Assembly: GCF_964204865.1 (NCBI RefSeq) | Contig: NC_135259.1 | Coordinates: 12,586,001 to 12,650,000 of the forward strand | Direction of reading: 5' to 3' | Source: Styela clava | Lineage: Eukaryota | DNA: 64,000 bases | Shown here: positions 1-45,793 of the stretch, in pieces | Position numbering within the stretch: the stretch's first letter is position 1 | Layout: every line of letters starts with the position of its first letter | Notes under the pieces: generated by a model | The model's input: only the letters and a program-made list of their open reading frames with translations | Databases searched by the model: none | What the model was told of the DNA's origin: nothing | Translations under genes and position numbers: made by a program

Positions 1-3000
1 AAAGTTGAATGGTTGGTTAACTGTAGTCGAAATAGAAAACATTCAAAGGTCAATTAACTCTAGTTCCGATCCATCGCCAGATGAGCCAGAAAGTTTGCCG
101 GCAGTAAGGACAATTGAGGTGGAGGAACAACTTTGTGATTGCCGCGAAAACACCGAAGAAGTGGAAGTTTTAGATGATGTTACCAGGAGAATTCTTGAAA
201 TAGCCCAAGAACAACGTTTACGCCAAGTTCCTTCAGTTCGAACTATTCCAAAATATAAACTATTCAGAGAAACAAGTGTAATAAACCAGGCCCTAAAAGG
301 AATTAGCTCGACTAACATAACGGAAACAAATAAGTTAATTTATGCCGGAGCAATAGCCGTCACTGAAAGACTAAGCCTCAATGTAAACGGAAGAAAATGT
401 AAAGAGCCAGCCTGGAAATTACGATTACACAATAAGATACAAGAGATGAGAAGAGATATTGACAGACTACAAAAATTTGAAACGATCAAGAAAAATAAAC
501 TGAAAAAAGAATTGATGGAGAAATACAGAGTAAAACAGAAAGGATTGTCATGCGCAACTGAAGAACTTCGACAAAGAATAATTGCAACTGCAGCAAAAAT
601 CAAGAGATATACAGAGAGAACAAGACAATTTCGCCAAAATAAACTGTTTGAAAGCAATCAAAAGCAATTATATCGGGAGTTATCAGGCGATTTTCATACC
701 AGTAAGGATGTAAGTAGAGAACCACAGAATTGCAGAGAATTTTGGAACAACATCTGGGGATCTAAAACCACTCATAATCAAAAATCTGCTTGGTTAAAAA
801 CAGTAAAGAAAGAATTGGAAAATATTCCTACTCAATTAAATTTCACGATAACTGAAGAAATTCTCAAAAGGCAATTGAAAAAACTAGCTAATTGGAAGTC
901 TCCAGGGGTTGATATGGTACAGGCATACTGGGTGAAAAAGTTCACTAGTCTGCATGCACGGATTGCAAAACAACTTGACTACTGTCTTCAGCAAGGCAAG
1001 GTTCCAAGTTGGATTACCGAAGGAAAAGCAGTATTGATTTTGAAAAACGAAAACAAGGGAAATAGTGCTAATAATTTTCGACCAATAACTTGTTTACCAA
1101 TCATATGGAAATTATTTACAGGAATGATTGCAACTAGTATATATGACCACATTGAACAAAACGATTTATTCCCGACGGAGCAGAAAGGGTGCAAGAGAGG
1201 GTCGCGTGGGCCAAAGGATCAACTTTTAATTGACAAAATGGTCTTGGATAACTGCAGAAAACGAAAAACAAGTTTATCCATGGCATGGATAGATTATCGT
1301 AAAGCTTACGATATGATTCCCCATTCATGGATTTCCAAATGCCTGGATTTGTTTGCAATAGCCAAAAATTTGAAAAAACTAGTCATAAACAGTATGGAAA
1401 CATGGAGAACGCATTTGACGGCAAATGGAAAACATTACGGAGAAATTCAAATAAAAAGAGGAATATTTCAGGGCGATACTCTCTCTCCACTTCTTTTTGT
1501 TCTGTGTATGATTCCACTGACGATGGTTTTGAGAAAAACAACACAATCATACTGCATAGGAAAAGGAAAGGAGCGGCTGAACCATCTCTTGTACATGGAC
1601 GATTTGAAACTATTCGGAAAAAACGACAAAGAAATAGACTCTTTAGTGAAAACTGTACACATTTTCAGTCGGGATATTGGAATGGATTTTGGGATAGATA
1701 AATGCGCAGTATTAAGTATGAAAAGGGGAAAAATTACTGACAGTGTGGGAATTTGTTTACCAGATGGGAATAGCATGAGCCAGCTCGAGGAAAGCAATGG
1801 ATACAAATACCTTGGAATATTGGAATCAAATTCGATAAACGAAAATCAAATGAAGAAACTGATCATCCATGAATATACTAAACGATTAAAACAAATTCTA
1901 AAATCAAAATTAAATGGCGGCAACATTATCAAAGCTATTAACATACGTGCAGTTTCGGTAATTAGATACAGCGCTGTTTTTATTGGTTGGTCAAAAAACA
2001 ATCTTGAAAAGCTCGACCGTAAGTCAAGAAAACTTTTAACAATGTACGGAATGCTTCATCCCAGAGGTGATGTTGACAGATTGTATTTGCCAAGGCAAAT
2101 GGGGGGCCGTGGATTAATGAGTGTTGAGGACTGTGTTCAAGCAGAGAAGAAAAGTATGACAGAGTATGCAGAGAATAGTGAAGATATTTTGATGAAAGCC
2201 GTGTATCGCGAGGGTATTTTGTGTGGCGACGAAGACTCAAATGCATTTAAAGAAAGGAAAATAGATGAAAGAATGGAAAGGTGGAAAGAAAAACCGTTGC
2301 ATGGGAAATACCTTCGTGAAACTAAAAATATAATGGTCGAGGACTCATGGAACTGGCTAAAGAAAGGATACCTCAAGAAGGAAACGGAAGGTTTGATAAC
2401 AGCTGCTCAAGAACAGGCTTTGAGAACAAATGTTATCAAAGCAAAAATCGAAAAGCGGGGAGTGTCTGCAAAATGTAGAATGTGTGATGCAAGAGATGAG
2501 ACAGTTTTTCATATATTGTGTGAATGCTCAAAATTGGCGCAAAGAGAATACAAATATCGACACGATAATCTAGCAAGAATTGTTCATTGGGAACTCTGCA
2601 AACTATACGGCCTTAACAGAGAAAATAATTGGTACGACCACACCCCAGAAAAATCACAAAACAATGATAACGTTACGATTCTATGGGATTTTAACATACA
2701 AACAGACCACGTCATTACCCACAGAAGGCCTGATATTGTAGTAATAAATTCATCCGAAAATACATGCTTGATAATCGACATAGCAGTTCCGGCCGATCAT
2801 CGTATTTTATTAAAGGAAAAAGAAAAAATAGAAAAAATATCAAGATTTACGGAGAGAAATGGGAAAAATATGGAATGTAAAAACGAGAATTATACCTGTT
2901 GTCGTTGGTGCCTTGGGTGCAATATCAAACAAGCTAGAAGGGTATTTAAAAGATATGAATTTGCCTAATAGATTGGAATCTTTGCAAAAGGCGGCTCTTT

Positions 3001-25900: not shown

Positions 25901-28900
25901 ATAATGTGGTCAAGTGCAAAATTAACATGGATGAGCCTATTGAGATTTTGCACACAATTATTCCTAATAAGGCTAATGAAAACAATCAGCCACCGATACG
26001 GAATCTTTTTAGTCACCTTGCCTAGCCAATGTATTTTTTCTAGGGTAGTGAGATGAGCAAGAGTTTTGCGATGCCACAATATGGCTACTTCCAACAGTCT
26101 AAATTTGTGGTGAAGTTTATCTGTATGAAAATTTGAAACGTCGGCAAAATACATTGTTTTGCTAACACAGGTTTATTTATCCTCGACATGAATATAAACC
26201 AACTATGCGCTAGCTATTCTAAATTTCAATATTTGGAACGCTATACTATACTATAGGTTCAAGCGCTCCTTACAGCGTCTGTGAAGATTCGACTGCAGGG
26301 GAAGTTATTCGATGCAATTTTTGAATGGAATAAATTGTTACGATACTATTTCATACTTCTCTGCTCAGTATTTGACAAGTATTCTCACTGAATTATATTA
26401 ACAACTAAAAAAATAGCGACAGAAAAAGGGAAGCTTTGCTCCGAGCCTAGAAATAACTGTTACATAGCCAGCAAGAGCTATTATGGAACGACCGGAAGCT
26501 ACAGATAATAATAATACTTTCACTGACACGCTACTGATTCAATTTTTTTACCGTTGTTTTGAGTAATACTTACAAGTATAATTTTATTTTAACAATGTAA
26601 AAATAGAAGTCATGACTGAGACGTTTGGAACATGGACTCAATGGACCAATTGGATGGTCTGCGATAAACATTGTGGAAAAGGAAAGCAGACTTCTACTAG
26701 AACGTGTGCTAGAGTAAGTTAATTTTCAGTTTTCTACAATTTCATTTACCGGTACAATTCAAAATCCTACAAATAAGTAAATTTGTGGTTTCGTTAACAA
26801 CAACAACGATAGACGTAACAGATATTATTCCAATTTCATCGAAGAATTTTCATGTTGCTCTCTGGAGCGTTTGAGATTTTCTTACACGCTTTTCACACTA
26901 TGTAAGACTCAACTAGACAAGGAGCTATCATGGTTTGTAAGGACTGTAACACATTTCAGGTACGGTATTTCCTACCCAATTTATTGCACTATAGGTTAGT
27001 AGTTGTGTTACATGAGATCTGAGAACAGGATGTTTCACCTCCGATAACAACATAGCTAAGTCCAACGCTTTAACCACAATGCCATTTTGTTTTCTTATAA
27101 CAATCGCTCTCAATGTCAATGATTCCATGCGGTACATATGCTGGCTAATTTACAATGCTATTTATTGTTAACCCTATTTACGTTGTTGAGTTAGCTTGTA
27201 TTTTTTCAGATTAGACTAATTTTTTTTTTATCTATTACCGGTATATATTTTAAGTATTTATGACGATGTCGATTCCGCCACCGAATCACCTTACTTCAGC
27301 ACTTGAAGTTGTCTTCACGCACTCTTATCCGAACACTGGCAAACATGTGAACACAAAAACATGTGTAATCCTGTAAAATCAAATGACTATCAGTTCCATA
27401 ATGCACTAACGCTGTGATATTAGTATTCTGTTTTCGCGCTGCATTCCTGCTGTCGTTCCCATGGTTACTCGCACATATGTGGTTGGAGTCGTTTTTTTGT
27501 TTTTCCGTGTATTGGGCGTCTCCTGGATGTTCAGGTCGTCTCGATTTCTATTTCTTCTTGAAGTTTTCATTGTATTTTAATTACTGTTAGATTTTATCAC
27601 AGTTGTCGCCGATCGATAACCAGTATTGGTTTCTCGCGACTTCTTTCACTCCGAATTACCGTTTTTCCTCCTTTTTATATTCTGTATCCATTTTGTGTAT
27701 TTCATGTATGGCGAAAAAATAAACTACTGATTACGCTTTCTTATTCAGAATGAAGAATATCTCCCAATCAAACGCTGTGCCATTCCAGATGATGTACCAA
27801 ATTTGAGCGAACATGGCAACGTAAGAGTTAGAGAATGTGAGCTTAGAGCTTGTGCAGGACAACCTGCTGGATCTGGTTCGACAAATTCAAATAACGTTGT
27901 CACAACAGCAGCACCTGGAGGAGCAGTCGGTGGTAAATATGAATTATTAGCTTTCGATGTCAGGTTTACGGTTGTTACTTACGCTTCGATGAGTGTTTGA
28001 TAACTTTTTTTTGAATTCCCTTGGAATAAACCAATTTTAGAGCATTTTTAAATCCTGATATGGATAAACATTGGGTGTCCTCAATATCTCATGAAATGTC
28101 GATAGCTAGTCATGTTTACTATTCCTGGTGCCCTGACACGGAGGTTGCCTTATTGGTCAAAGAATGAAAAACAACAACTCGTTTATATTTTTTATTCAGG
28201 GTCATCCAACCAGTGGGGCGAATGGAGTCAATGGTCAACTTGTGACGTCACGTGTGGAGAAGGACAATGGACGAGGTAACGGCATAGTTAGGAATTATAG
28301 GTCTAGGATTAATGGCAATAATGATATAACACCAACAAGCTTGAATTAGCTTGCCGAAATTTAATATTTTACTATAACTCGAATATAGTCTGTTTCTATA
28401 AATTAAATTGAATGTCCCGAGTCTTGTCGCAAGGTCTATCAACTTCCAATTGAATATTTCATAGATAAGTCGAAAAAAAAACTATTGTACATTACCATAG
28501 TAGTGAGATCAAACTCTTAAGAAAAATGCATTCAAATTACCTCTAAAATAGCAAACGCTTTTTTAGGAATATTCATTTATAGACTGCAAAAGTAAAACTT
28601 CCTTTTAAGTGATTACACTTGAAACAAGTTCATGCATCTGAAACAAACAACAGCTCAAGTACTCCTATACCCGCCATGTTTTGGTAACCGGTCGAGAGAG
28701 AGACGGGGGGGGGGGGGGGGGGGGGGCTCACGAAGTATGTGCAACAAGATGGCGCACAACCTGAACCCTAACCTGGTACAACCACTATGTTCAGGCTGTG
28801 CGCCATCTTGGTGCACATACTTCAGGAGGTCCGACGGGAGTTCACCATATGATTAAATTGTCTTGTCACCTTTCCTCTCTTACTCAAAATAATTTGCGAT

Positions 28901-34427: not shown

Positions 34428-36658
34428 GCGATTCAAAACTTACAGGAAACCACCAACACATGCACGGCCCGTTCCTATGTAAGTTTCATAACGCCTTCTC
34501 AGAATTACAGCTCACCCAAATGGGTTCATTTTCCACTGTTGCCAGATTAGAGACCTAATTGTTCGCTCATAGTTAGTTTTAATGTGAGTAATTGTTCACA
34601 CCACATTATGAAATTTGAGGGAAACAGCGTTACTCACACAGTCACACGGCCTGTTTCACACAAGTTTCAACACGTAACTGGGAATGATCAATGATATTAT
34701 GTGATATCGCTGATATTACAAATGTATATGATGCGATGTCTCCATTGCATGTCGTTTGGTGTTTTAACACTTCTGCACACATTAGGACATAGCGAAATAG
34801 GCTGATGCTATTAAACAGCCATTTCCGTTATGTTCCGACGCGAACGAGTTTGAATAAACTTGCTATTTGGTTCTAAATTAGCCCGTACTTAGTATTTCAA
34901 ATTGATTCTCTGGATTTGATGATAGACTTGATTACACTGCGGATCTACCATGAGCGGGTCTGAATTTATGAAGCCCGTTCCGTGAAAGTTCCACCGTGTA
35001 TCACAAGATTCCTCTACAAAGGAAGGATGTTGTTTCCAATACACGTTCAAACTTGTCTGAAACAGCCAGTGGACACAAGCGGCCTGTTTCACGATAAGTT
35101 TCAGTGCGTATCTGGATAATATAAAATCACACAGTACTTTCAAAGTTGCAGGTACTATATAAACGGTAGTAAATATTATTCTGTTCCGTAATGAGAAGTT
35201 AAGACCCTATCAGTTGATGTCGAAATTGTACGATGGGGGACATAGGAGAAAGTACCGAATAAATTTCAGCCCTTTCCGTTATGTTCCGTATCGGGCATTC
35301 GAGTATAAAACATTATCATTTAATGTTGAAATTGTATTTAAAACACAGAAGAGAAAGTGCCAAACATAGTACAGCCTTTTATGTTGTGTTTCGTACCGGT
35401 AGCGTGAGCATCATAAAACTTCGACACTCGAACTATCGCGAATGAGCAAAAACCTTCCACCCGATTTCCAAATTGTACGCTGTAGGACATAGAGGAAAGT
35501 GCCGAGCACGATACAGCCCTTTCATTTATGTTCCGTTGCGTACATTCGAGTGTATCAGCCATTTTGGCGTATGTTAGATTGACTTAGGAATCACATGAAT
35601 TCATTCGAGGATAATCAAGTTTGCACACTGTGAGACACATCGAAAAAGACTATTGTAGCACAGCCCTTTCCGTTATGTTCCGAAGTGGATCAAATGCAAT
35701 TGTCATCGTCTTCAATTGTATAACTACGAAATGAAACCTGCTTGAAGATAATCAAAATGACACACTGTAGGACACATCGGAAAAGACTATTATACCACAG
35801 CCCTTTCCGTTATGTTCCGTGGTGTATGTTTGAATATACCGAATATCATTGTCAATTTATTCGATTACATGAAGTTTATTTACATCGAACATGAAACCTA
35901 CTTGAAGATAAATAAAATGGCACACTGTGAGACATATCAGAAAAGACCGAATAATTGAGTACAGCCCTTTCCGTTATGTTCCGTAGTGGACTTTCGAAAA
36001 TGCCTAATGTCATTCTTATATTCTTAAATTGCATTATGTTTATCTATCTTGAAAATGAAAACTGAAGATAACTAAAACGGCACACTATGAGACATAGCAG
36101 AAAAGACTGAATACTTGATCAGTCCTTTCCGTTATGTTCCGTAGTGGACTTTCGAAAATACCAAAGTGTCATTCTTACTTTGTTTAAATGCATAAATTAA
36201 GTTTATTTTCCTCAAAATGACAACTGTTTGAAGATAATTAAAATGGCACACAATGAGACATATCAGAAAAGACCGAATATATACTTGATCAGTCCTTTCC
36301 GTTATGTTCCGTTGCGAACCATCGAATCTGGCAACTTTCTGGTTTGTAGCATCATCCCATCAGCGTACCGGTGCCCGGTAGTGCATCGCGCCCTAAAGAA
36401 CTGCAGAAGATAGTCAATGTCGCTCACTTTGAGACATATCTGAAAAGACTTGATAAAAACAGTCCTTTCCGATATGTTCCGTTATGAGCCATTGAAAATT
36501 TGTGAATGTACTTACAAATATTTAACATGTAACTTTCCGTTAAGTTACACGGAAAGCAGCCAATTTGAAAACATTGTTGCGGTATTGAGTTCGGTGGGGA
36601 TCATTCTGGAATGGATCTCGAGTTTTACAAACCCGTTCCAAGAAAGTTCCAAATCGAA
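34428..36658 (-). ncRNA. Predicted polycistronic miRNA cluster L (14 pre-miRNA-like hairpins)
   Basis: 60-75 nt imperfect hairpins. Conserved arms (plus coordinates): family 1 at 34816, 35267, 35514, 35661, 35798, 35962, 36120, 36290, 36460; family 2 at 34465, 34647, 34971, 35080, 36629. A-C oppositions on plus become G:U pairs on minus. Confidence 0.8.
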
Positions 36659-36719
36659 AACAATGAATGTCCCTAAAAGCAGGTCTGTTGCTTGAAGGAG
36701 AGTGAGCAGTTTGCTATCG

Positions 36720-36900
36720 ATTTCGGACTGGATTCTGATTTTAAAGCAAGATCGTTCGCACTTCTTCCGGCATGTAATCCTTTGTCTGGAACATCGGAAC
36801 TACCTGATTGTTTGTTATCTACCACACCTTGAGCCTATAGGTCGATATTTCGAATATTAATTAGCGCTTACGCAATATGCTAATAGGCGGGAGCCGACGC
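36720..36900 (-). promoter_or_regulatory. Conserved leader or promoter-proximal element upstream of cluster L
   Basis: Reverse complement aligns with 40130-40310, including identical ATCAGGTAGTTCCGATGTTCCAGAC, CTCAAGGTG and GATAACAAA. Confidence 0.6.
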
Positions 36901-38007
36901 ATCGCATATCCCGCAGACTTATACGTTCAATTAAGGATTAGCTGCGGGTGGCGTAATAGCAAACAAAAGAATAATAAGTTGAATGAGAGATAGTTCTCTA
37001 ACACAATTGTAAGAGACAAAGCGAACCCACTTAATTTATTTCGTTCAATCAATTATTTAGGTAGTTCATATTTTATGTTCAATACAAACTATATAGGAAA
37101 TTCATAAATCATCGGTCAATGATTCGTCTCCAAATATCTCAATCATTGTCGTTGAAGCTGAGCCAATCACAAATCCAACAAATTTTGACAGTAATACCCA
37201 ATTGCCGTTTCTATGTAGATATATGCTATACCTCGTTTAGGTAGGCTGTCTAATAATATTAATTCAAAAATCCAATAGAAGTAAAGAGAACCTAAAATAC
37301 TGCGAATTAGATAAGATATCCTGATAATGCGCTTTTATCAGATAATCTTATTATCAAAATCTTTATTATTAAAAATATTGTCTAGCGTTATAATGTAAGC
37401 TTCTGTTTACCGAGGGTTTTTACTAATTAGATTTGACGAACTCGACTCTTAGGACTTTGATCTTGTTTTTCAACTTCATAGGGTCGAAAGTTGTTTTTGT
37501 TCAATCAAATGACGATCTCGTTTCTCAACGTTACATTAAGTTTAGAAGAACAGTTTCCAGATACACACAAATTCTTTGAGGTATCTTCAGACCTGAGCCA
37601 TATTTTACCTTTCGAATCTGCTTAGTACTTACTCATGGATAGAGGATTCTATATTATTGGTTTGGATTTAACAGCAACAAAAATGGATTCAATTTGTATT
37701 GAGAGATATTTAGAACAATACTAGATAGATATTTAGCACCACACATATACACCAATCTTTCTAACTCAACTTCTTTCTGCATACGCAATTTAGATACATG
37801 ACATATCAATTAATATAAACTTCTTTTGTCGTATTATGAAAATAAAATGCGAGTAATACGAAGTATAATCATTCTATGTAACATTAGTAACTGAATTGAC
37901 ATATTCTTATGTGATTGGATTGTCATCAAATTCTTTAGACTACACTTGCGCCCAACGGATACTTATTAAAATCGAGTTTCTTATTGGAAACGAAGTGACA
38001 CTATAGA

Positions 38008-38075
38008 TCAGGGTGGTCCAATCCCAGGCCCACGGGCCACATGTGGCCTGCCGCTTCATTATCTGTGGCCCGCTT
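38008..38075 (+). mobile_element. hAT-like MITE end fragment
   Basis: CAGGGTGGTCCAA terminus followed by GGCCC(A/G)C sub-terminal repeats. Confidence 0.5.
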
Positions 38076-38689
38076 CGCATTTGCGCGAAGGTAAACAAAA
38101 ATAGGTATTTGGTGTTGTTTCGTCATAAAAATAACCAGGAAAATATTTTGACATATTGTTACATCACTAATGTCACTGAATTGACTAGTGTTATAGAGAA
38201 GTTGAATAATGTGTTTGGCTAGTCAACAGTATTACAAAAAATGCTGCCTATATGTCAGAAAATTTAGAAGTTACTCTCATGTATCTTAAATTTGGTAAAA
38301 TTCGGTAATCAATCAATCTGCAGGTAATTGTGAGTTATTTTGTAAACATGAATTTAAAAAGAAAGCTGACCAATTCAAACAGATTTTTGACTTGATATGG
38401 GAGGGAAAATATCACAATGCTCGCTTATGTCTGCAGGTTGTGTCGGTGACAATCTGAGACAGCACTTGAAGCACTCACGTTATGAAGAGTTTAAAATCTT
38501 ACACTAAATGTAGATATAGTAGTATTTTTGGTAGTTTTTGCATGTTTTAGCTTAATAAAAGACAAATAATGATCAATTGGATGGATCAATGTTTGGACAA
38601 TAAAAGTGTTTGTTTTGTATTGCATTATTTTTATTGATGTTGTGTCGTATTTAATTTTCATTGGTTAAAGGCTGTTGTTTCTGTAAGAC

Positions 38690-38892
38690 GGTTCCATTAC
38701 ATTTGAACCCACGTACACTTGAACCCATGACAATTGCACCTGTATGCTATTGCACCTATGGATTTTTTTTTGTTTCACGGATAGTTAAACCCATACTAAC
38801 CCTAACCCATGGGTTTTAGCACCCGCATATAGATTGAACCCGTGGATATACACATGGGTTCAAATGTACGTGGGTTCAAATGTACGGTAACC
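38690..38892. mobile_element. MITE family B, 9-bp TSD CTGTAAGAC
   Basis: Near-identical to 16668-16854. Confidence 0.85.
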
Positions 38893-40129
38893 CTGTAAGA
38901 CTATTACCCTTATTTAATTTAAAAATTTCTCTGGGCTCTATGAAATGCGATGACATCATCAAAATTAAAAATTGCGCACCTTGTGGCGGTTTCGCGATCG
39001 TTGCGATCTGGTGGTCAGTCGAAGTCGGGAAGACTACGATACCGGTGCTGTTAAAGATTTGATACCCGTACTACTTCGCTTAGACGTCCGTGTCTATATA
39101 TTTGAATAATGCTCTCTGATTCATTTAGATACTAAAAACATCTGAGTGCATACTCAGCTTCATTAGACTTTGTCTCTATTTATATATATTGTCTTGTCTT
39201 ATAAACTCCCCTGTATAAACAGTTTTGTATACTCCACCCTTACCACTTTCACCACACCAAACGACCCATTGCCCCACCTTGAACAACTGTCTAAATAAGG
39301 GACCATATTATACATATTTAATCTAATGTTCTTTGTTTTATATTTGTCAAAAAGGGTGCATGCCGCACATTTGTGTTTTAGGCCAGTACGGTCTTGTGCA
39401 GGCATCCCGTCTTAAATAATAATAATCGTTCATTTATTTTTTTATCACTATTACGAGACGAATAAACATACATACATACATTCTAATTATAACAATTTGA
39501 AATTGAAATAATTGTTAGTTCACCTAAAACGGCAACAAAAGTCAACTTCTATGTCGCCTTACTGTATTTTTGACGGATTTTTTTATATAATGTATTTCTC
39601 AAACATGGTGTAGAAGGAAATTTTCAGTATTGCTTTTTTAATTTTCATATCATAAAAATTCTTGGACTTGCCAAATATTTATTACCTTGCTTTGGTCGAA
39701 AAGTGCTCTCATTTCAAGTCCAGGTATTTTAGTTTACTTGTGCGTGTGATTTTGATGCTATGTGTGCATCTGGACATCTGAAATGTTTCTTTTTATTTAC
39801 GATGTGAATTATTTGAAGTGAACAATTATTAGTGCCAACATCTTATAAAACACACGCTTGAGAAGACTTCATCAGAGATGTATTTATCTTCGAAGCATTA
39901 GCATTTGGGACAACAATTTTGAATTTTATCACAAATAGTGATGAAATGAAGGCGCGTATTGGGATATTGGAATTAACATTATGCAAGTATGCCTCAGTTC
40001 GTACATTTCTCAGAAGCTAAATTAAAGTTGAAAAGAATAAAATAGCCGCGAAGCTATTGTTTACTCTTACGCCACTTTCTGATATAATCATCTGTTGGAC
40101 ATATCAGGTGACAAGAACTTGAATCCCCG

Positions 40130-40310
40130 GTGCGAACCCGCTTGTTATCTTGATTAAAGCGCGACAATTAATGATAAGAGTTTATACCGCCGAGTCTCAA
40201 GGTGCGAGCGATAACAAATGATCAGGTAGTTCCGATGTTCCAGACGGAAGATTGCATAGACGAAAAAGTGCGAGCCATTTGCTTTATAATCCAGCTCGAA
40301 TTCGAAAATG
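40130..40310 (+). promoter_or_regulatory. Conserved leader or promoter-proximal element upstream of cluster R
   Basis: Inverted homolog of 36720-36900. Confidence 0.6.
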
Positions 40311-40444
40311 ACATCAATCACTTGGGTTCATCCCAAGCAGAAGACCTCTTCCATCTATTGGCATCAGCAAGTATCGGTCTATCACAATGAATTCACCTTA
40401 TGTAAGTAAGTATTAGAACTGTGCATTTTCAAACTCATCTTATA

Positions 40445-41933
40445 ATTCGCTTTGGAACTTTTCTGGAACGGGTTTTGTTTTTCGAACAAATATTCCGAAA
40501 CCCATTTCTAAAAGATCCCGACTGAATATTTGACTATCATCAAACGAATATAAATTTAGACATCGGCTCGTAATTTGGGTATTCGCATCGGAACATAGCG
40601 GAAAGAGCTGTCTTCATATCATTAGCTCTTTACGGTGTGTCCTACTGCGAGTACAACTTACACAACACTAGTTATACTGTTTACTATAAGTCAATGTTAT
40701 GAAGAAACGCAGACAAGAAAATTGATACCTCGCTTCGGAACATATCGGAAAGGGCTGCTATAGTATTCAGCTCGTTCTGAAATGTCCTAACGTGAGTTGA
40801 TCTCGGATATCTTCACTATATCACCTCAACTATGATTACCTCACTATATTTGGAGGTTTACTACGGAACATAACGAAAACGGCTGGTTATTGTATAGGTG
40901 TTCCGCCTGGTCCGCTATGTCCTAATGTACGCTCATCTTGCTTTCACCCGTTTTCCGATTCCTACTTTCCGATCTTTACGTTGAAACTTATTTAGAAACA
41001 GGCCGTGTCTTAGATGGCAGTTTCAAATAAGATTCAAAGCAAATTGAGGACTTTCACGCAACGAAAAGAGAAGAATTATATTTGAATTGTCCATATTTGG
41101 TTTCGTATTGGAACTTACTTGGAACGGATTTGAGGGACATTATGTAAGACCTTTCCGGTAAGATCCACAACGAAGGAAATACTGTCTCCTACTACAAGTC
41201 ATATGTATTTTGTTAATACTGTTTTAAAGTAAGACAACGATTGTTTCGGGTTTTCACAAAGGAACATGGCGGAAAGTGCTGTTTGAAATAAAACTCAGCT
41301 AATTCCATCATGTCCAATGTGATTACACCGTCTATCAGAGATGCAAGAAGAAAATATTGGACAGTGGCCTTCGGAACATAACGGAAAAGGCTGTTCCCAG
41401 TTTCTGCCTTCTGCGATATGTCTCAATGACCGCGGTACTTCAATTTCTACAATCCAAAAATTTGTTTATAATTTTCAAGATACAGGTAAACTAAACATAA
41501 CTTTTACTGGAGTGTGGTCTTCGGAACATAACGGAAATGGCTGTTTTCATCTTCGGTCTTTTCCGGTATGTCTCAACGGCCACGAAACTTCAATTTCTAC
41601 AATTTTTTATGGGTATAATTTAGGAAATCAAAAATCACATTTAAATAATGAAGAGTGGCTTGTGGAACACAGCTATGCTTCAATTTCTACAATCTGCCTA
41701 AGTATGGAACAAAATCCAATACGTGCTGGGATGTGGTCTTCGGAACATAACGGAAAGGGCTGTTATCATATTCTACCTTTTCCGATATGTCTCAATAACC
41801 GCAATGCTTAAATTTCTTCTACAGTGTTGCATTGAAACATCTGTGAATATTTTCTTAAGACGCAATGAAACTTATATTGGAACGGGCCGTGTATTTAATA
41901 AAATGGCGGTTGCTTATAAGTTTTGTAGAGTCT
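40445..41933 (+). ncRNA. Predicted polycistronic miRNA cluster R (11 hairpins plus one truncated unit at ~41655)
   Basis: 5' arms: family 1 (T/A)CGGAACATAACGGAAAGGGCTG-like at 40588, 40735, 40863, 41259, 41371, 41521, 41740; family 2 TG(G/A)AACTT-type at 40452, 40981, 41108, 41865; each is followed by a complementary 3' arm and basal stem. Confidence 0.8.
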
Positions 41934-44914: not shown

Positions 44915-45793
44915 TCAAACAGTTTTCAAGCCATGTAATGTTTCATCTTTCTGAGTTTTACGGAATACGATTGTAGGATAAACATATGTCAAGATGAAAG
45001 ATAATTCCTCATCTGCAGTATTTTCAACATCTAGAAGTTTCTTGACTTTTTTTGCGAGAACGTCAAGCGGATCATTGCATGAAGTATAGTTACCAATGTG
45101 ATATTCGCCCATACTTGCAAAAAAATCTTTGTATTCTGACATAGTGTATATTGCATTGCTTTTGATTCCACTGATCCACTCTTTTGTATTATTTTTCAGT
45201 TGTTTAAAAATTTCGACATAGAAATCGAACGCCACTGTTGTACGGTGGTGTGCGTTCACATTGCTCAGATAATCACGATGTACTTCTATCAGAGAAATAC
45301 TTTTAATGTTTCCTTCATTACTCTGAGTCACTTTAGTTGCTTTTATAGGAACATAAGTGTATATTGCGCAGCATCCACCAGGCTTTAAAACTCTTTCACA
45401 TTCTCTTTCGAATATTTCCATATCAAGCCAATGCGCGGAACAAGCACACGTTACCAAGTCGATGGTACTATCTTCCACGGGTAACAGATTATCATCAACC
45501 AGTTGAAAGCATACATTTTCGCTTGTGTTGATTTTGTTTGCTAAAAGTATTTGAGCTTCGCTGATATCGATACCTAGAATTGATTCAAAATGATGTGAGT
45601 ACATATGAGTGTTCTGGCCGCTACCGCATCCAACGTCAATCATTTTTCTTGGTTTACAATTAGGTTTGATTCCGTCTTTCAAATACTTCAAAACAGATTC
45701 CAATATTTCTGTAGGATATGTTGGTCGACTTACCATGTACAAATTTGCTAATTTGCTACCTTCATAATATCGATAAATTTTAGCTGGCAACAT
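44915..45793 (-). CDS. Class I SAM-dependent methyltransferase (Methyltransf_11/25-like), intronless
   Basis: 292-aa ORF: RPTYP, IDVGCGSGQ motif I, GIDISEAQI, DLVT..SAHW, ERVLKPGG. Confidence 0.9.
   Translation of the reverse strand: MLPAKIYRYYEGSKLANLYMVSRPTYPTEILESVLKYLKDGIKPNCKPRKMIDVGCGSGQNTHMYSHHFESILGIDISEAQILLANKINTSENVCFQLVDDNLLPVEDSTIDLVTCACSAHWLDMEIFERECERVLKPGGCCAIYTYVPIKATKVTQSNEGNIKSISLIEVHRDYLSNVNAHHRTTVAFDFYVEIFKQLKNNTKEWISGIKSNAIYTMSEYKDFFASMGEYHIGNYTSCNDPLDVLAKKVKKLLDVENTADEELSFILTYVYPTIVFRKTQKDETLHGLKTV

Follow-up and report, generated by a model that had tools for sequence, protein, structure and literature searches.

The block between positions 34428 and 41933 of the window (the whole 64,000-nucleotide stretch of Styela clava DNA analysed here) is very probably, at roughly 85%, two divergent microRNA genes with many hairpins each, members of the ascidian miR-4000/4001/4006/4018 superfamily. 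In the left array (34.43-36.65 kb, minus strand) 14 hairpins are good and one copy is decayed; in the right array (40.45-41.93 kb, plus strand) 11 are good and one unit is the remnant of a deletion. These 15 left and 12 right units bring together the sites of a pattern scan and copies recognised by eye. An earlier note on this DNA had counted 14 and 11 hairpins in opposite orientation; this count was exact, because L7 is decayed and R10 is the remnant of an internal deletion. The parts of the locus are the following.

34432-34488, minus: L1, pre-miRNA-like hairpin, 5' arm UGAAACUU..., miR-4000 type
34607-34669, minus: L2, hairpin, UGAAACUU type
34781-34837, minus: L3, hairpin, CGGAACAU type (miR-4006/4018 type)
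34938-34993, minus: L4, hairpin, UGGAACUU type (miR-4001 type)
35045-35103, minus: L5, hairpin, UGAAACUU type; tree partner R5
35234-35288, minus: L6, hairpin, CGGAACAU type
about 35337-35401, minus: L7, decayed copy (CGAAACAC...); poor fold (z -0.17), partial match (22.4 bits)
35482-35535, minus: L8, hairpin, CGGAACAU type; basal stem UGUACGC/GCGUACA
35629-35682, minus: L9, hairpin, CGGAACAU type
35767-35819, minus: L10, hairpin, CGGAACAU type; opens a 160-bp tandem repeat as its unit one
35926-35983, minus: L11, hairpin, CGGAACAU type
36086-36141, minus: L12, hairpin, CGGAACAU type
36252-36311, minus: L13, hairpin, CGGAACAU type; z -6.9
36428-36481, minus: L14, hairpin, CGGAACAU type
36595-36651, minus: L15, hairpin, UGGAACUU type; opens the left array, counterpart of R1
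36737-36836, minus: left leader, non-hairpin block shared with the right leader; homology extends more weakly over about 36560-37000
36837-40192, no strand: centre between the leaders, unique, non-coding
38690-38892: MITE-like inverted repeat in the centre
39170-39481: SINE-like insertion in the centre
40193-40291, plus: right leader, 80% identical to the other strand of the left leader; weaker homology over about 40030-40545
40453-40521, plus: R1, hairpin, UGGAACUU type; opens the right array
40589-40645, plus: R2, hairpin, CGGAACAU type
40736-40790, plus: R3, hairpin, CGGAACAU type; top Rfam mir-4018 match (23.2 bits)
40864-40925, plus: R4, hairpin, CGGAACAU type; minimum-energy fold takes another form (z +0.59), alignment-based hairpin retained
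40982-41038, plus: R5, hairpin, UGAAACUU type
41109-41169, plus: R6, hairpin, UGGAACUU type
41260-41318, plus: R7, hairpin, AGGAACAU type
41372-41426, plus: R8, hairpin, CGGAACAU type
41522-41576, plus: R9, hairpin, CGGAACAU type
about 41664-41700, plus: R10, remnant (UGGAACAC...); hairpin body deleted, unit flanks retained
41741-41796, plus: R11, hairpin, CGGAACAU type
41866-41927, plus: R12, hairpin, UGAAACUU type; closes the right array

With up to three mismatches allowed, 15 matches to an 18-nt core of the conserved arm were found in the window, against 0.01 expected; those at 34.8-36.5 kb share one strand, and the others, at 40.6-41.8 kb, the opposite one. A looser scan with the arm pattern gave 21 sites within the two arrays, compared with two unrelated chance matches in the other 56 kb. 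When the units were folded with the conserved arm placed 5', 25 of the 27 formed a single imperfect stem-loop, with minimum free energies of -19 to -35 kcal/mol and z-scores mostly between -2 and -7 (above -2 in five of the 25). The predicted pre-miRNAs measure 53-69 nt, with loops of 9-25 nt. Below the predicted start of the 5' arm the median number of basal pairs is 10 (range 3-14), and the basal stem that the earlier note had singled out at 35474-35544 was recovered in the fold of L8; within the 5' arm a median of 17 of the 22 bases is paired. CNNC motifs numbered 20 over the five positions 17-21 nt past the predicted end of the 3' arm and about one per position elsewhere, although these counts, like those of covariation below, are not independent events because the copies are paralogues. 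The units thus fit what is expected of canonical animal microRNA precursors: a single hairpin of about 55-70 nt whose arms measure some 22 nt, a lower stem of about 11 bp and a downstream CNNC. Hairpins of comparable quality numbered 25 in the 3.75 kb of the arrays, where they are spaced by 110-250 nt (median about 150), versus one to four on each strand over some 16 kb of flank and centre. Three seeds, GGAACAU (16 of the 25 hairpins), GAAACUU (five) and GGAACUU (four), are interleaved in both arrays.

Constraint within the units was concentrated on one arm, as had been claimed from the sequence. Among the 16 GGAACAU-type copies the mean pairwise identity was 0.91 for the 22-nt 5' arm and about 0.46 for the 3' arm, the latter value being an underestimate because the 3' arms are imperfectly in register; identity of the flanks was 0.28-0.45 in these copies, and 0.22-0.45 at its widest. 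The partner arms drifted yet continued to pair: 91.6% of pair cells were paired, against 35-50% with the partners slid, and eight pairs (among paralogous copies) had changed on both sides, four of them in the basal helix. None of 500 shuffled controls reached any of the five pairing measures. Compensatory changes keep the pairing, including that of the roughly 10-bp basal stem.

Outside the hairpins, only the leader can still be aligned between the left and right arrays, the non-hairpin spacers having diverged beyond detection. The leaders, of roughly 100 nt, lie at the inner side of each array and hold sequence related to the conserved arm on the other strand, without a hairpin. The leader is a candidate promoter-proximal or first-exon element and the centre a candidate shared control region. 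Promoters, cap sites and polyadenylation signals were searched for at the locus and none was identified; AATAAA is absent from the 2 kb past the right array.

The seeds (nucleotides 2-8) are identical to those of named members of the superfamily: GGAACAU to csa-miR-4006 and 4018a, GAAACUU to miR-4000e/f and GGAACUU to miR-4001. In Rfam, mir-4000 and mir-4018 accounted for 11 of the 19 weak matches in the region. Scores (19-23 bits in the window, 27 on a second contig, C17) fell far short of the gathering scores of RF03485 (mir-4000, 58 bits) and RF03660 (mir-4018, 66 bits), models which we take to contain Ciona sequences only. The kinship to Ciona miR-4000/4001/4006, which the earlier note had raised, is thus borne out by the three shared seeds, by similar 3' halves and by concordant weak Rfam matches. 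Seeds and 3' halves also fit Ci-mir-2203, 2200 and 2201 of C. intestinalis. The family rule of Hendrix et al. (PMC2884542) requires an exact seed at nucleotides 2-7 and at most four mismatches in the mature sequence. Aligned by hand with Ci-mir-2203-3, the main type has four mismatches in 20 positions and falls within this rule, whereas the UGAAACUU and UGGAACUU types are borderline, because their alignment requires a 1-nt gap plus three to four mismatches.

We then considered the rest of the 377-Mb genome. No further copy of the arm core (with zero or one mismatch) or of a 25-mer of the leader was found, and the centre is also unique, one SINE-like insert excepted. The many dispersed copies expected of a foldback transposon or MITE were not found, arm core, leader core and centre being unique apart from that insert. 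Related arms occur at only two other loci, both on contig C17, so that the family totals three loci in the genome. One, covering roughly 220 kb, is an array in which about 790 hairpins carry the GGAACAU seed. The other, 345 kb before it, is a small Ciona-like cluster with near-identical miR-4000 (21/23), miR-4001 (20/23), miR-4018b (20/25) and mir-1502-like hairpins; C17 copies differ from family members at 2-3 of 23 positions. The label of microRNA paralogue cluster given to the window locus agrees with its constraint and homology, but that of mega-cluster suits the C17 array better. At somewhat less than even odds, the C17 array may be a functional amplification of the GGAACAU type with the window cluster as its older relative, the two together forming an independent tunicate counterpart of miR-430/miR-427 that acts at very high dose in maternal or early embryonic stages, with the leader marking a shared bidirectional control region. 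If so, C17 would carry possibly the largest microRNA gene array known in any animal.

The orientation of the arrays was assessed from the folds. The predicted sense strand was the more stable in 18 of the 27 units (by 3.6 kcal/mol on average over all units; Wilcoxon p 0.016), while the opposite strand folded equally well or better in nine. These nine units, together with weak antisense matches to the covariance model and in Rfam, are what would be expected if the arrays were real microRNA genes transcribed on the opposite strands (convergently or by read-through) or on both, the functional RNA being the complement of the arm or antisense products adding further seeds. In Ciona, antisense products are known from 44 of 380 microRNA loci, three of them in the related scaffold-20 cluster. 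We consider such transcription unlikely: the mean difference in stability favours divergent reading, the mature sequences published for the family all derive from the 5' arm and read as the conserved arm does, and in each array the conserved leader is found at the inner end. Stability of the folds and orientation of the published sequences support arrays that are read divergently, away from each other, in agreement with the bidirectional layout first proposed.

Even though the 160-bp tandem units, the decayed and deleted copies (L7 and R10) and the satellite-like array on C17 would suit a decaying repeat (foldback transposon, MITE array or satellite) with units palindromic by chance and without small-RNA function, such an origin is very improbable. 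Block, arm core and leader have no copy elsewhere in the genome, randomised spacers beside a 91% identical arm with compensatory pairing are not a product of neutral decay, and the Ciona homologues are expressed microRNAs. Slightly less credible still is that the conserved 22-mer is a protein-binding site repeated at the DNA level or that the hairpins feed an endogenous siRNA or piRNA pathway. The repeated GGAA core of the arm and the arm-related, hairpin-free sequence of the leader would fit a DNA site; however, covariation that includes the basal helix, outside the arm, indicates RNA structure, and hairpins of 53-69 nt with a lower stem of about 10 bp and a positioned CNNC fit Microprocessor substrates and not sources of long hairpin RNA or piRNA.

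Returning to a pair of divergent microRNA genes, we infer transcription, start sites, processing, guide arm and timing of expression as follows. Transcription of each array would probably begin at or near the conserved leader and lead outward, away from the unique 3.4-kb centre. The left primary transcript would start at about 36.84 kb and end at 34.4 kb on the minus strand, the right one start at about 40.19 kb and end at 41.95 kb on the plus strand. The hairpins, each built of a lower stem of roughly 10 bp, an imperfect upper stem of roughly 22 bp and a loop of 9-25 nt, would be cut by the Microprocessor (Drosha and its partner) and then by Dicer, and the conserved 5' arm would be loaded into Argonaute as the guide. 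Three seeds that differ by single bases would provide a high dose of few overlapping specificities, with predicted target sites AUGUUCC (for GGAACAU), AAGUUUC (for GAAACUU) and AAGUUCC (for GGAACUU). By homology with Ciona, the setting is most likely the oocyte and early embryo, and possibly the larval mesenchyme. The commonest guide would begin with C, which is unusual for Argonaute loading; csa-miR-4018a likewise begins with C and has been detected by northern blot and in situ hybridisation. Its probable origin is an array of mixed families that underwent an inverted duplication long ago, after which each side expanded separately in tandem. The tree contained three seed clades with side-specific subclades, and the cross-array pair L15/R1 had good bootstrap support, that of L5/R5 being weaker (SH-aLRT 0).

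Judged by sequence, the locus is a further example of the ascidian-specific type of microRNA cluster known from Ciona and Halocynthia, since seeds and 3' halves match and Ciona holds a 25-hairpin, three-family cluster. New here are the arrays pointing apart, the shared leader and, on C17, both the array of about 790 hairpins and the small Ciona-like cluster. In Hendrix et al. 2010 (PMC2884542), Scaffold_71 of Ciona intestinalis (robusta) carries 25 microRNAs in roughly 4 kb, in three families one seed base apart; Ci-mir-2200/2201/2203 correspond by sequence to the miRBase families miR-4000/4001/4006, and in the examples given there 5' arm reads exceed 3' arm reads more than 1000-fold. One member of the cluster gives about 10^4 reads in the egg, in the early embryo and at gastrula, against about 10 in the adult. 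The window locus resembles Scaffold_71 in its about 25 hairpins at roughly 150-nt spacing, its three seeds one base apart, its short pre-miRNAs and its 3' halves (...GGAACRGGCC and ...AAGGGCUG). It differs in that the Scaffold_71 members listed there lie on one strand over about 4-5 kb, whereas the window has two opposed arrays 3.8 kb apart with a shared leader; the mature sequences also diverge in their middle, with at best 16 of 20 positions identical. Hendrix et al. viewed the Ciona cluster as a recent species-specific expansion (PMC2884542); the window locus argues for an older origin.

The miR-4018a/4000f/4018b cluster of Ciona savignyi shares the GGAACAU seed of miR-4018 with the main type of the window, and miR-4018 has a validated site, AUGUUCC, in Lefty (PMC5831862, PMC8965075). 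That cluster and the 11-microRNA cluster on Ciona scaffold 20 have 3-11 members and are expressed in larval mesenchyme; their counterpart in Styela clava is the small C17 cluster and not the window locus. In Halocynthia roretzi, the predicted Harore-miR-5021, 7238a, 5009, 4000a and 4000b on scaffold S4 link GGAACAU and GGAACUU hairpins within 5 kb, like the mix in the window, but only 5-6 members are annotated, their support is mapped Ciona (not Halocynthia) reads and a mirrored layout is not reported (PMC5399378). Harore-miR-5021 and the main type have GGAACAUAAC and GGAAA..GCUG in common.

Many tandem copies with few shared seeds also characterise miR-430 of fish and miR-427 of Xenopus, whose arrays deliver a high dose in early development, and the C17 array equals or exceeds them in scale. 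The miR-430/427 seed is AAGUGCU. It was not found here, where the seeds are GGAACAU, GAAACUU and GGAACUU, and the likeness is one of analogy and not of homology, because the seeds are unrelated. The timing differs too: miR-430 is a zygotic product, but the unfertilised egg of Ciona already contains the RNAs of its cluster. A miR-430-like early role, possibly with clearance of maternal mRNA, is supported for the locus only indirectly, through a member of the homologous Ciona cluster that is abundant in egg, early embryo and gastrula and nearly absent from the adult.

Two arrays of hairpin units were delimited in the window, which lies on contig C13 of the 377-Mb assembly and is AT-rich (GC 0.30-0.39):

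34.43-36.65 kb, minus strand: left array, units L1 to L15
40.45-41.93 kb, plus strand: right array, units R1 to R12

A scan of the window with the 18-nt core of the conserved arm returned 15 copies with at most 3 mismatches, against 0.01 expected, nine on one strand (34.8-36.5 kb) and six on the other (40.6-41.8 kb). With a looser, family-wide pattern, 21 arm sites were found within the two arrays, the only exceptions being 2 unrelated chance matches. When copies added by eye were joined to these matches, the left array totalled 15 units and the right array 12. Folding gave a single imperfect stem-loop with the conserved arm on the 5' side in 25 of the 27 units, with minimum free energies of -19 to -35 kcal/mol and z-scores against dinucleotide shuffles mostly between -2 and -7 (above -2 in 5 of the 25). 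The two exceptions are L7, which has decayed, and R10, from which the hairpin body is missing; the count of 14 + 11 hairpins in the earlier note is therefore exact. Between L14 and L15, a short inverted repeat (36520-36560, CUUUCCG...CGGAAAG) is possibly the remnant of another family hairpin.

Predicted pre-miRNA length is 53-69 nt, including a loop of 9-25 nt. The lower stem, beneath the point where the conserved arm begins, has 10 pairs (median), and 17 of the 22 bases of the arm are paired (median). A CNNC motif occurs 20 times at the five positions 17-21 nt past the inferred end of the 3' arm, against about once per position elsewhere, these anatomical counts being non-independent because the copies are paralogues. 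In lower stem, arm and CNNC spacing, the units have the proportions of a Microprocessor substrate.

Three arm types, named here by their seeds, are present in the window, and each matches published ascidian sequences. The main type (GGAACAU) has the seed of miR-4006/4018; the two others, compared with C. savignyi mature sequences from the supplement of PMC5831862, are as follows:

GAAACUU type: UGAAACUU...GRAACRGGCCG, 5 hairpins, matching csa-miR-4000f UGAAACUUCGCUGGAACAGGCCGG
GGAACUU type: UGGAACUU...GGAACGG, 4 hairpins, matching csa-miR-4001 CGGAACUUUCCAAGGAACAGGCU

In the supplement of Hendrix et al. 2010 (PMC2884542), the matching families carry the provisional names Ci-mir-2203, 2200 and 2201. 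Between the main type and Ci-mir-2203-3 there are 4 differences in 20 positions, within the family rule of these authors, an exact seed with at most 4 mismatches. The closest mature sequences found for this genome came from Halocynthia. In Halocynthia roretzi, miR-5021 (UGGAACAUAACAGGAAAUUGCUG), miR-5009 and miR-4000a/b are predicted within 5 kb on scaffold S4, with the support of mapped Ciona reads (PMC5399378). These families are otherwise reported from ascidians only. At gathering thresholds, Rfam gave no match within the window; at an E-value setting, the mir-4000 and mir-4018 models provided 11 of the 19 weak matches in the region, all full-length and far under gathering. A full-text literature search for the mature sequences returned no match.

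Constraint was measured on the 16 main-type copies.

Mean pairwise identity among the GGAACAU copies
5' arm (22 nt): 0.91
3' arm: about 0.46, an underestimate because the register is imperfect
Spacers and basal flanks: 0.28-0.45, and 0.22-0.42 when the left array is compared with the right

Of the cells in the 23 pairs of the consensus structure, 91.6% are paired, against 35-50% when the partners were slid, and none of 500 shuffles attained any of five structure measures. Changes on both sides were found in 8 pairs, 4 of which belong to the basal helix, beyond the mature duplex. A BLAST alignment of the left side to the right recovered nothing but the hairpin bodies and the leader described below. 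From the contrast in identity, the kept pairing and the restriction of the alignment to hairpins and leader, it follows that the array duplicates are old and that one arm and the fold are under purifying selection. These results support the proposal of the earlier note that this is a miRNA paralogue cluster related to Ciona miR-4000/4001/4006. The locus is an ascidian miR-4000/4001/4006/4018 cluster, of an already known kind, whose expression, processing and function in Styela are predicted from sequence.

In 18 of the 27 units the strand carrying the arm on the 5' side was the more stable (mean difference 3.6 kcal/mol, Wilcoxon p 0.016), an effect of G:U pairs that turn into A:C on the opposite strand. 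Mature sequences published for the family have this same orientation. Taken together, fold stability and this orientation suggest that both arrays would be read outward from the centre, the left one along the minus strand and the right one along the plus strand.

The order of the families from the centre outward is common to both arrays. Each begins with a single GGAACUU hairpin and continues with a series of GGAACAU hairpins; a single GAAACUU hairpin and then a single GGAACUU hairpin follow, after them at least one GGAACAU hairpin and, last, one or two of the GAAACUU type.

A maximum-likelihood tree separated three seed clades. It paired L15 with R1 across the arrays with good bootstrap and L5 with R5 more weakly (SH-aLRT 0), and it also contained side-specific subclades and terminal branches that are long (0.51 changes per site in the median). 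The youngest expansion on the left shows as 3.5 repeats of a 160-bp period. The shared order, the tree and this period fit an inverted duplication of old date, after which each side expanded in tandem on its own.

Between the arrays lie the following features:

36737-36836 and 40193-40291: leaders, just inside each array, 80% identical over 100 nt
36784-36808 and 40221-40245: 25-nt invariant core of the leaders
36837-40192: centre, between the leaders
38690-38892: MITE-like element, with 40-nt inverted ends (90% complementary) holding a 16-nt tandem repeat (TGGGTTCAAATGTACG)
39170-39481: SINE-like interspersed repeat, 312 bp

The leader is the sole non-hairpin similarity between the two sides, and its homology extends more weakly over about 450 nt. 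It does not behave as a hairpin (z-scores +0.2 to +1.2, both strands) or as coding sequence, the two copies being open in different frames and matching no Pfam family above threshold. Its 25-nt core has no other occurrence in the genome, although perfect identity over such a length is only slightly unusual: at a background identity of 75-80%, we estimate that about 0.3 such runs would be expected over the aligned stretch. On the inferred sense strand the core reads ...GUAGUUCCGAUGUUCCAGAC, including AUGUUCCA, which matches the cluster's GGAACAU seed as an 8-mer; read on the opposite strand, the core looks like a family arm but lacks a hairpin. Possible explanations of the core are a relic or a target site of the cluster itself. 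Because all other spacers are randomised, we infer that the leader serves each transcription unit as a functional element, either promoter-proximal or in the first exon.

A transposon origin of the array block was rejected, the arm core, the leader core and the centre (bar the SINE-like insert) being unique in the genome. Of that insert, at least 40 copies (88-97% identical) were scored across many contigs, and there were thousands of candidate copies on first look; aside from it and the MITE-like inverted repeat, the 3.4-kb centre is unique. Two other elements of the window were recorded. A near-perfect 80-nt palindrome at 28738-28817 (-48 and -54 kcal/mol by strand), unrelated to the miRNA family, is probably a transposon end or MITE, and an open frame of 987 aa at 5-2968 (plus strand), which has a reverse-transcriptase domain (RVT_1, E 7e-26) and extends past the window start, is probably a retrotransposon.

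No recognisable coding exon was found within several kb of the cluster. Open reading frames over and around the arrays contained no Pfam families, and a 156-aa frame at 41341-41811, which passes through hairpins, was rejected as spurious. The nearest recognisable gene, 3 kb to the right, is an intron-less 292-aa frame (44915-45793, minus strand) with a class I SAM-dependent methyltransferase domain (Methyltransf_11, E 8e-19). We found no published report of a mirrored, diverging arrangement with a shared leader; this architecture, with its single conserved non-hairpin leader, offers a concrete starting point for a promoter search.

Genome-wide, matches to the main arm core (0-1 mismatches) were restricted to the window locus, and related arms clustered at only two further places, both on contig C17 of the same assembly:

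17,297,100-17,299,900, minus strand: small cluster with miR-4000-, miR-4001-, miR-4018b- and mir-1502-like arms or hairpins
17,642,611 to beyond 17,829,951, both orientations: large array with the 5' arm UGGAACAUUUGCGAAAGAGCUG

The small cluster carries UGAAACUUCUAUGGAACAGGCCG (21/23 identical to csa-miR-4000e), UGAAACUUCCAUGGAACAGGCCG (22/23 identical to Harore-miR-4000c) and CGGAACUUCCGUAGGAACAGGCU (20/23 identical to csa-miR-4001). It also has a mir-1502-like hairpin and a miR-4018b-like arm, AGGAACAUUC..., which gave no simple hairpin in the span tried. The same linkage is found on Ciona scaffold 20 and Halocynthia S290, and this cluster is likely the counterpart of those two. Outside the three clusters, isolated single arm matches occurred at C2:11,165,348, C9:633,142, C9:13,040,278, C9:18,035,118 and 18,036,049, C14:4,540,297 and C16:5,385,480. 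Elsewhere on C9 (16,179,895-16,180,164), an exon matched glycoside hydrolase family 6 (GH6) with 35 bits, above the Pfam cut-off; GH6 is known among animals solely from tunicate cellulose synthase, and this exon, together with the Ciona-type miRNA families, points to a tunicate genome.

The large array, located by pattern search, has the seed of the window's main type. Its core GGAACATTTGCGAAASAGC occurs 792 times genome-wide with at most 1 mismatch (control, 1), and 662 of these copies lie within the 200 kb analysed. The array continues at 17,829,951, and from the copies left unaccounted we estimate that it ends about 35 kb further on. A hairpin with the arm on the 5' side was present in 650 of the 662 copies, at a density of about 72 per 20 kb (~3.6 per kb). 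Four orientation switches divide the array into blocks of 22, 106, 59, 4 and at least 471 copies, and in one block segments recur at an offset of about 7.26 kb. The hairpin varies less than its flanks, with major-allele frequencies of 0.97 (5' arm) and 0.92 (3' arm) against 0.70 (flanks), and the maximum-likelihood tree placed the array inside the GGAACAU clade. A genome search with a covariance model (150 candidates scored) recovered the window copies and one C17 hairpin and missed the array, whose copies score only 20-24 bits. We found no published report of this sister array of about 790 copies.

The closest precedent is in Ciona. Hendrix et al. 2010 (PMC2884542) describe a cluster of 25 linked miRNAs in about 4 kb, with three families one seed base apart, and a second cluster of 11, both deemed recent and specific to C. 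intestinalis. In examples from their tables, products of the 5' arm exceed those of the 3' arm by more than 1000-fold. One member, mir-2200-10, yields about 10^4 reads each in egg, early embryo and gastrula, against about 10-30 in the adult. Larval trunk mesenchyme is where C. savignyi expresses its miR-4018a/4000f/4018b cluster; expression drops at metamorphosis, and the cluster represses Lefty via an AUGUUCC site (PMC5831862, PMC8965075), which is the complement of the window's main seed. The Ciona 25-miRNA cluster, once held to be recent and private to C. intestinalis, has a deep counterpart in another tunicate: the window shares its three seed families, similarly interleaved. Since the spacers here are fully randomised, this type of cluster is old and under selection. 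If the C17 array is expressed, extreme miRNA gene dosage near the egg-to-embryo transition would have been reached independently by tunicates and vertebrates, and such an independent origin, if true, would make the purpose of this dosage testable in a second chordate lineage.
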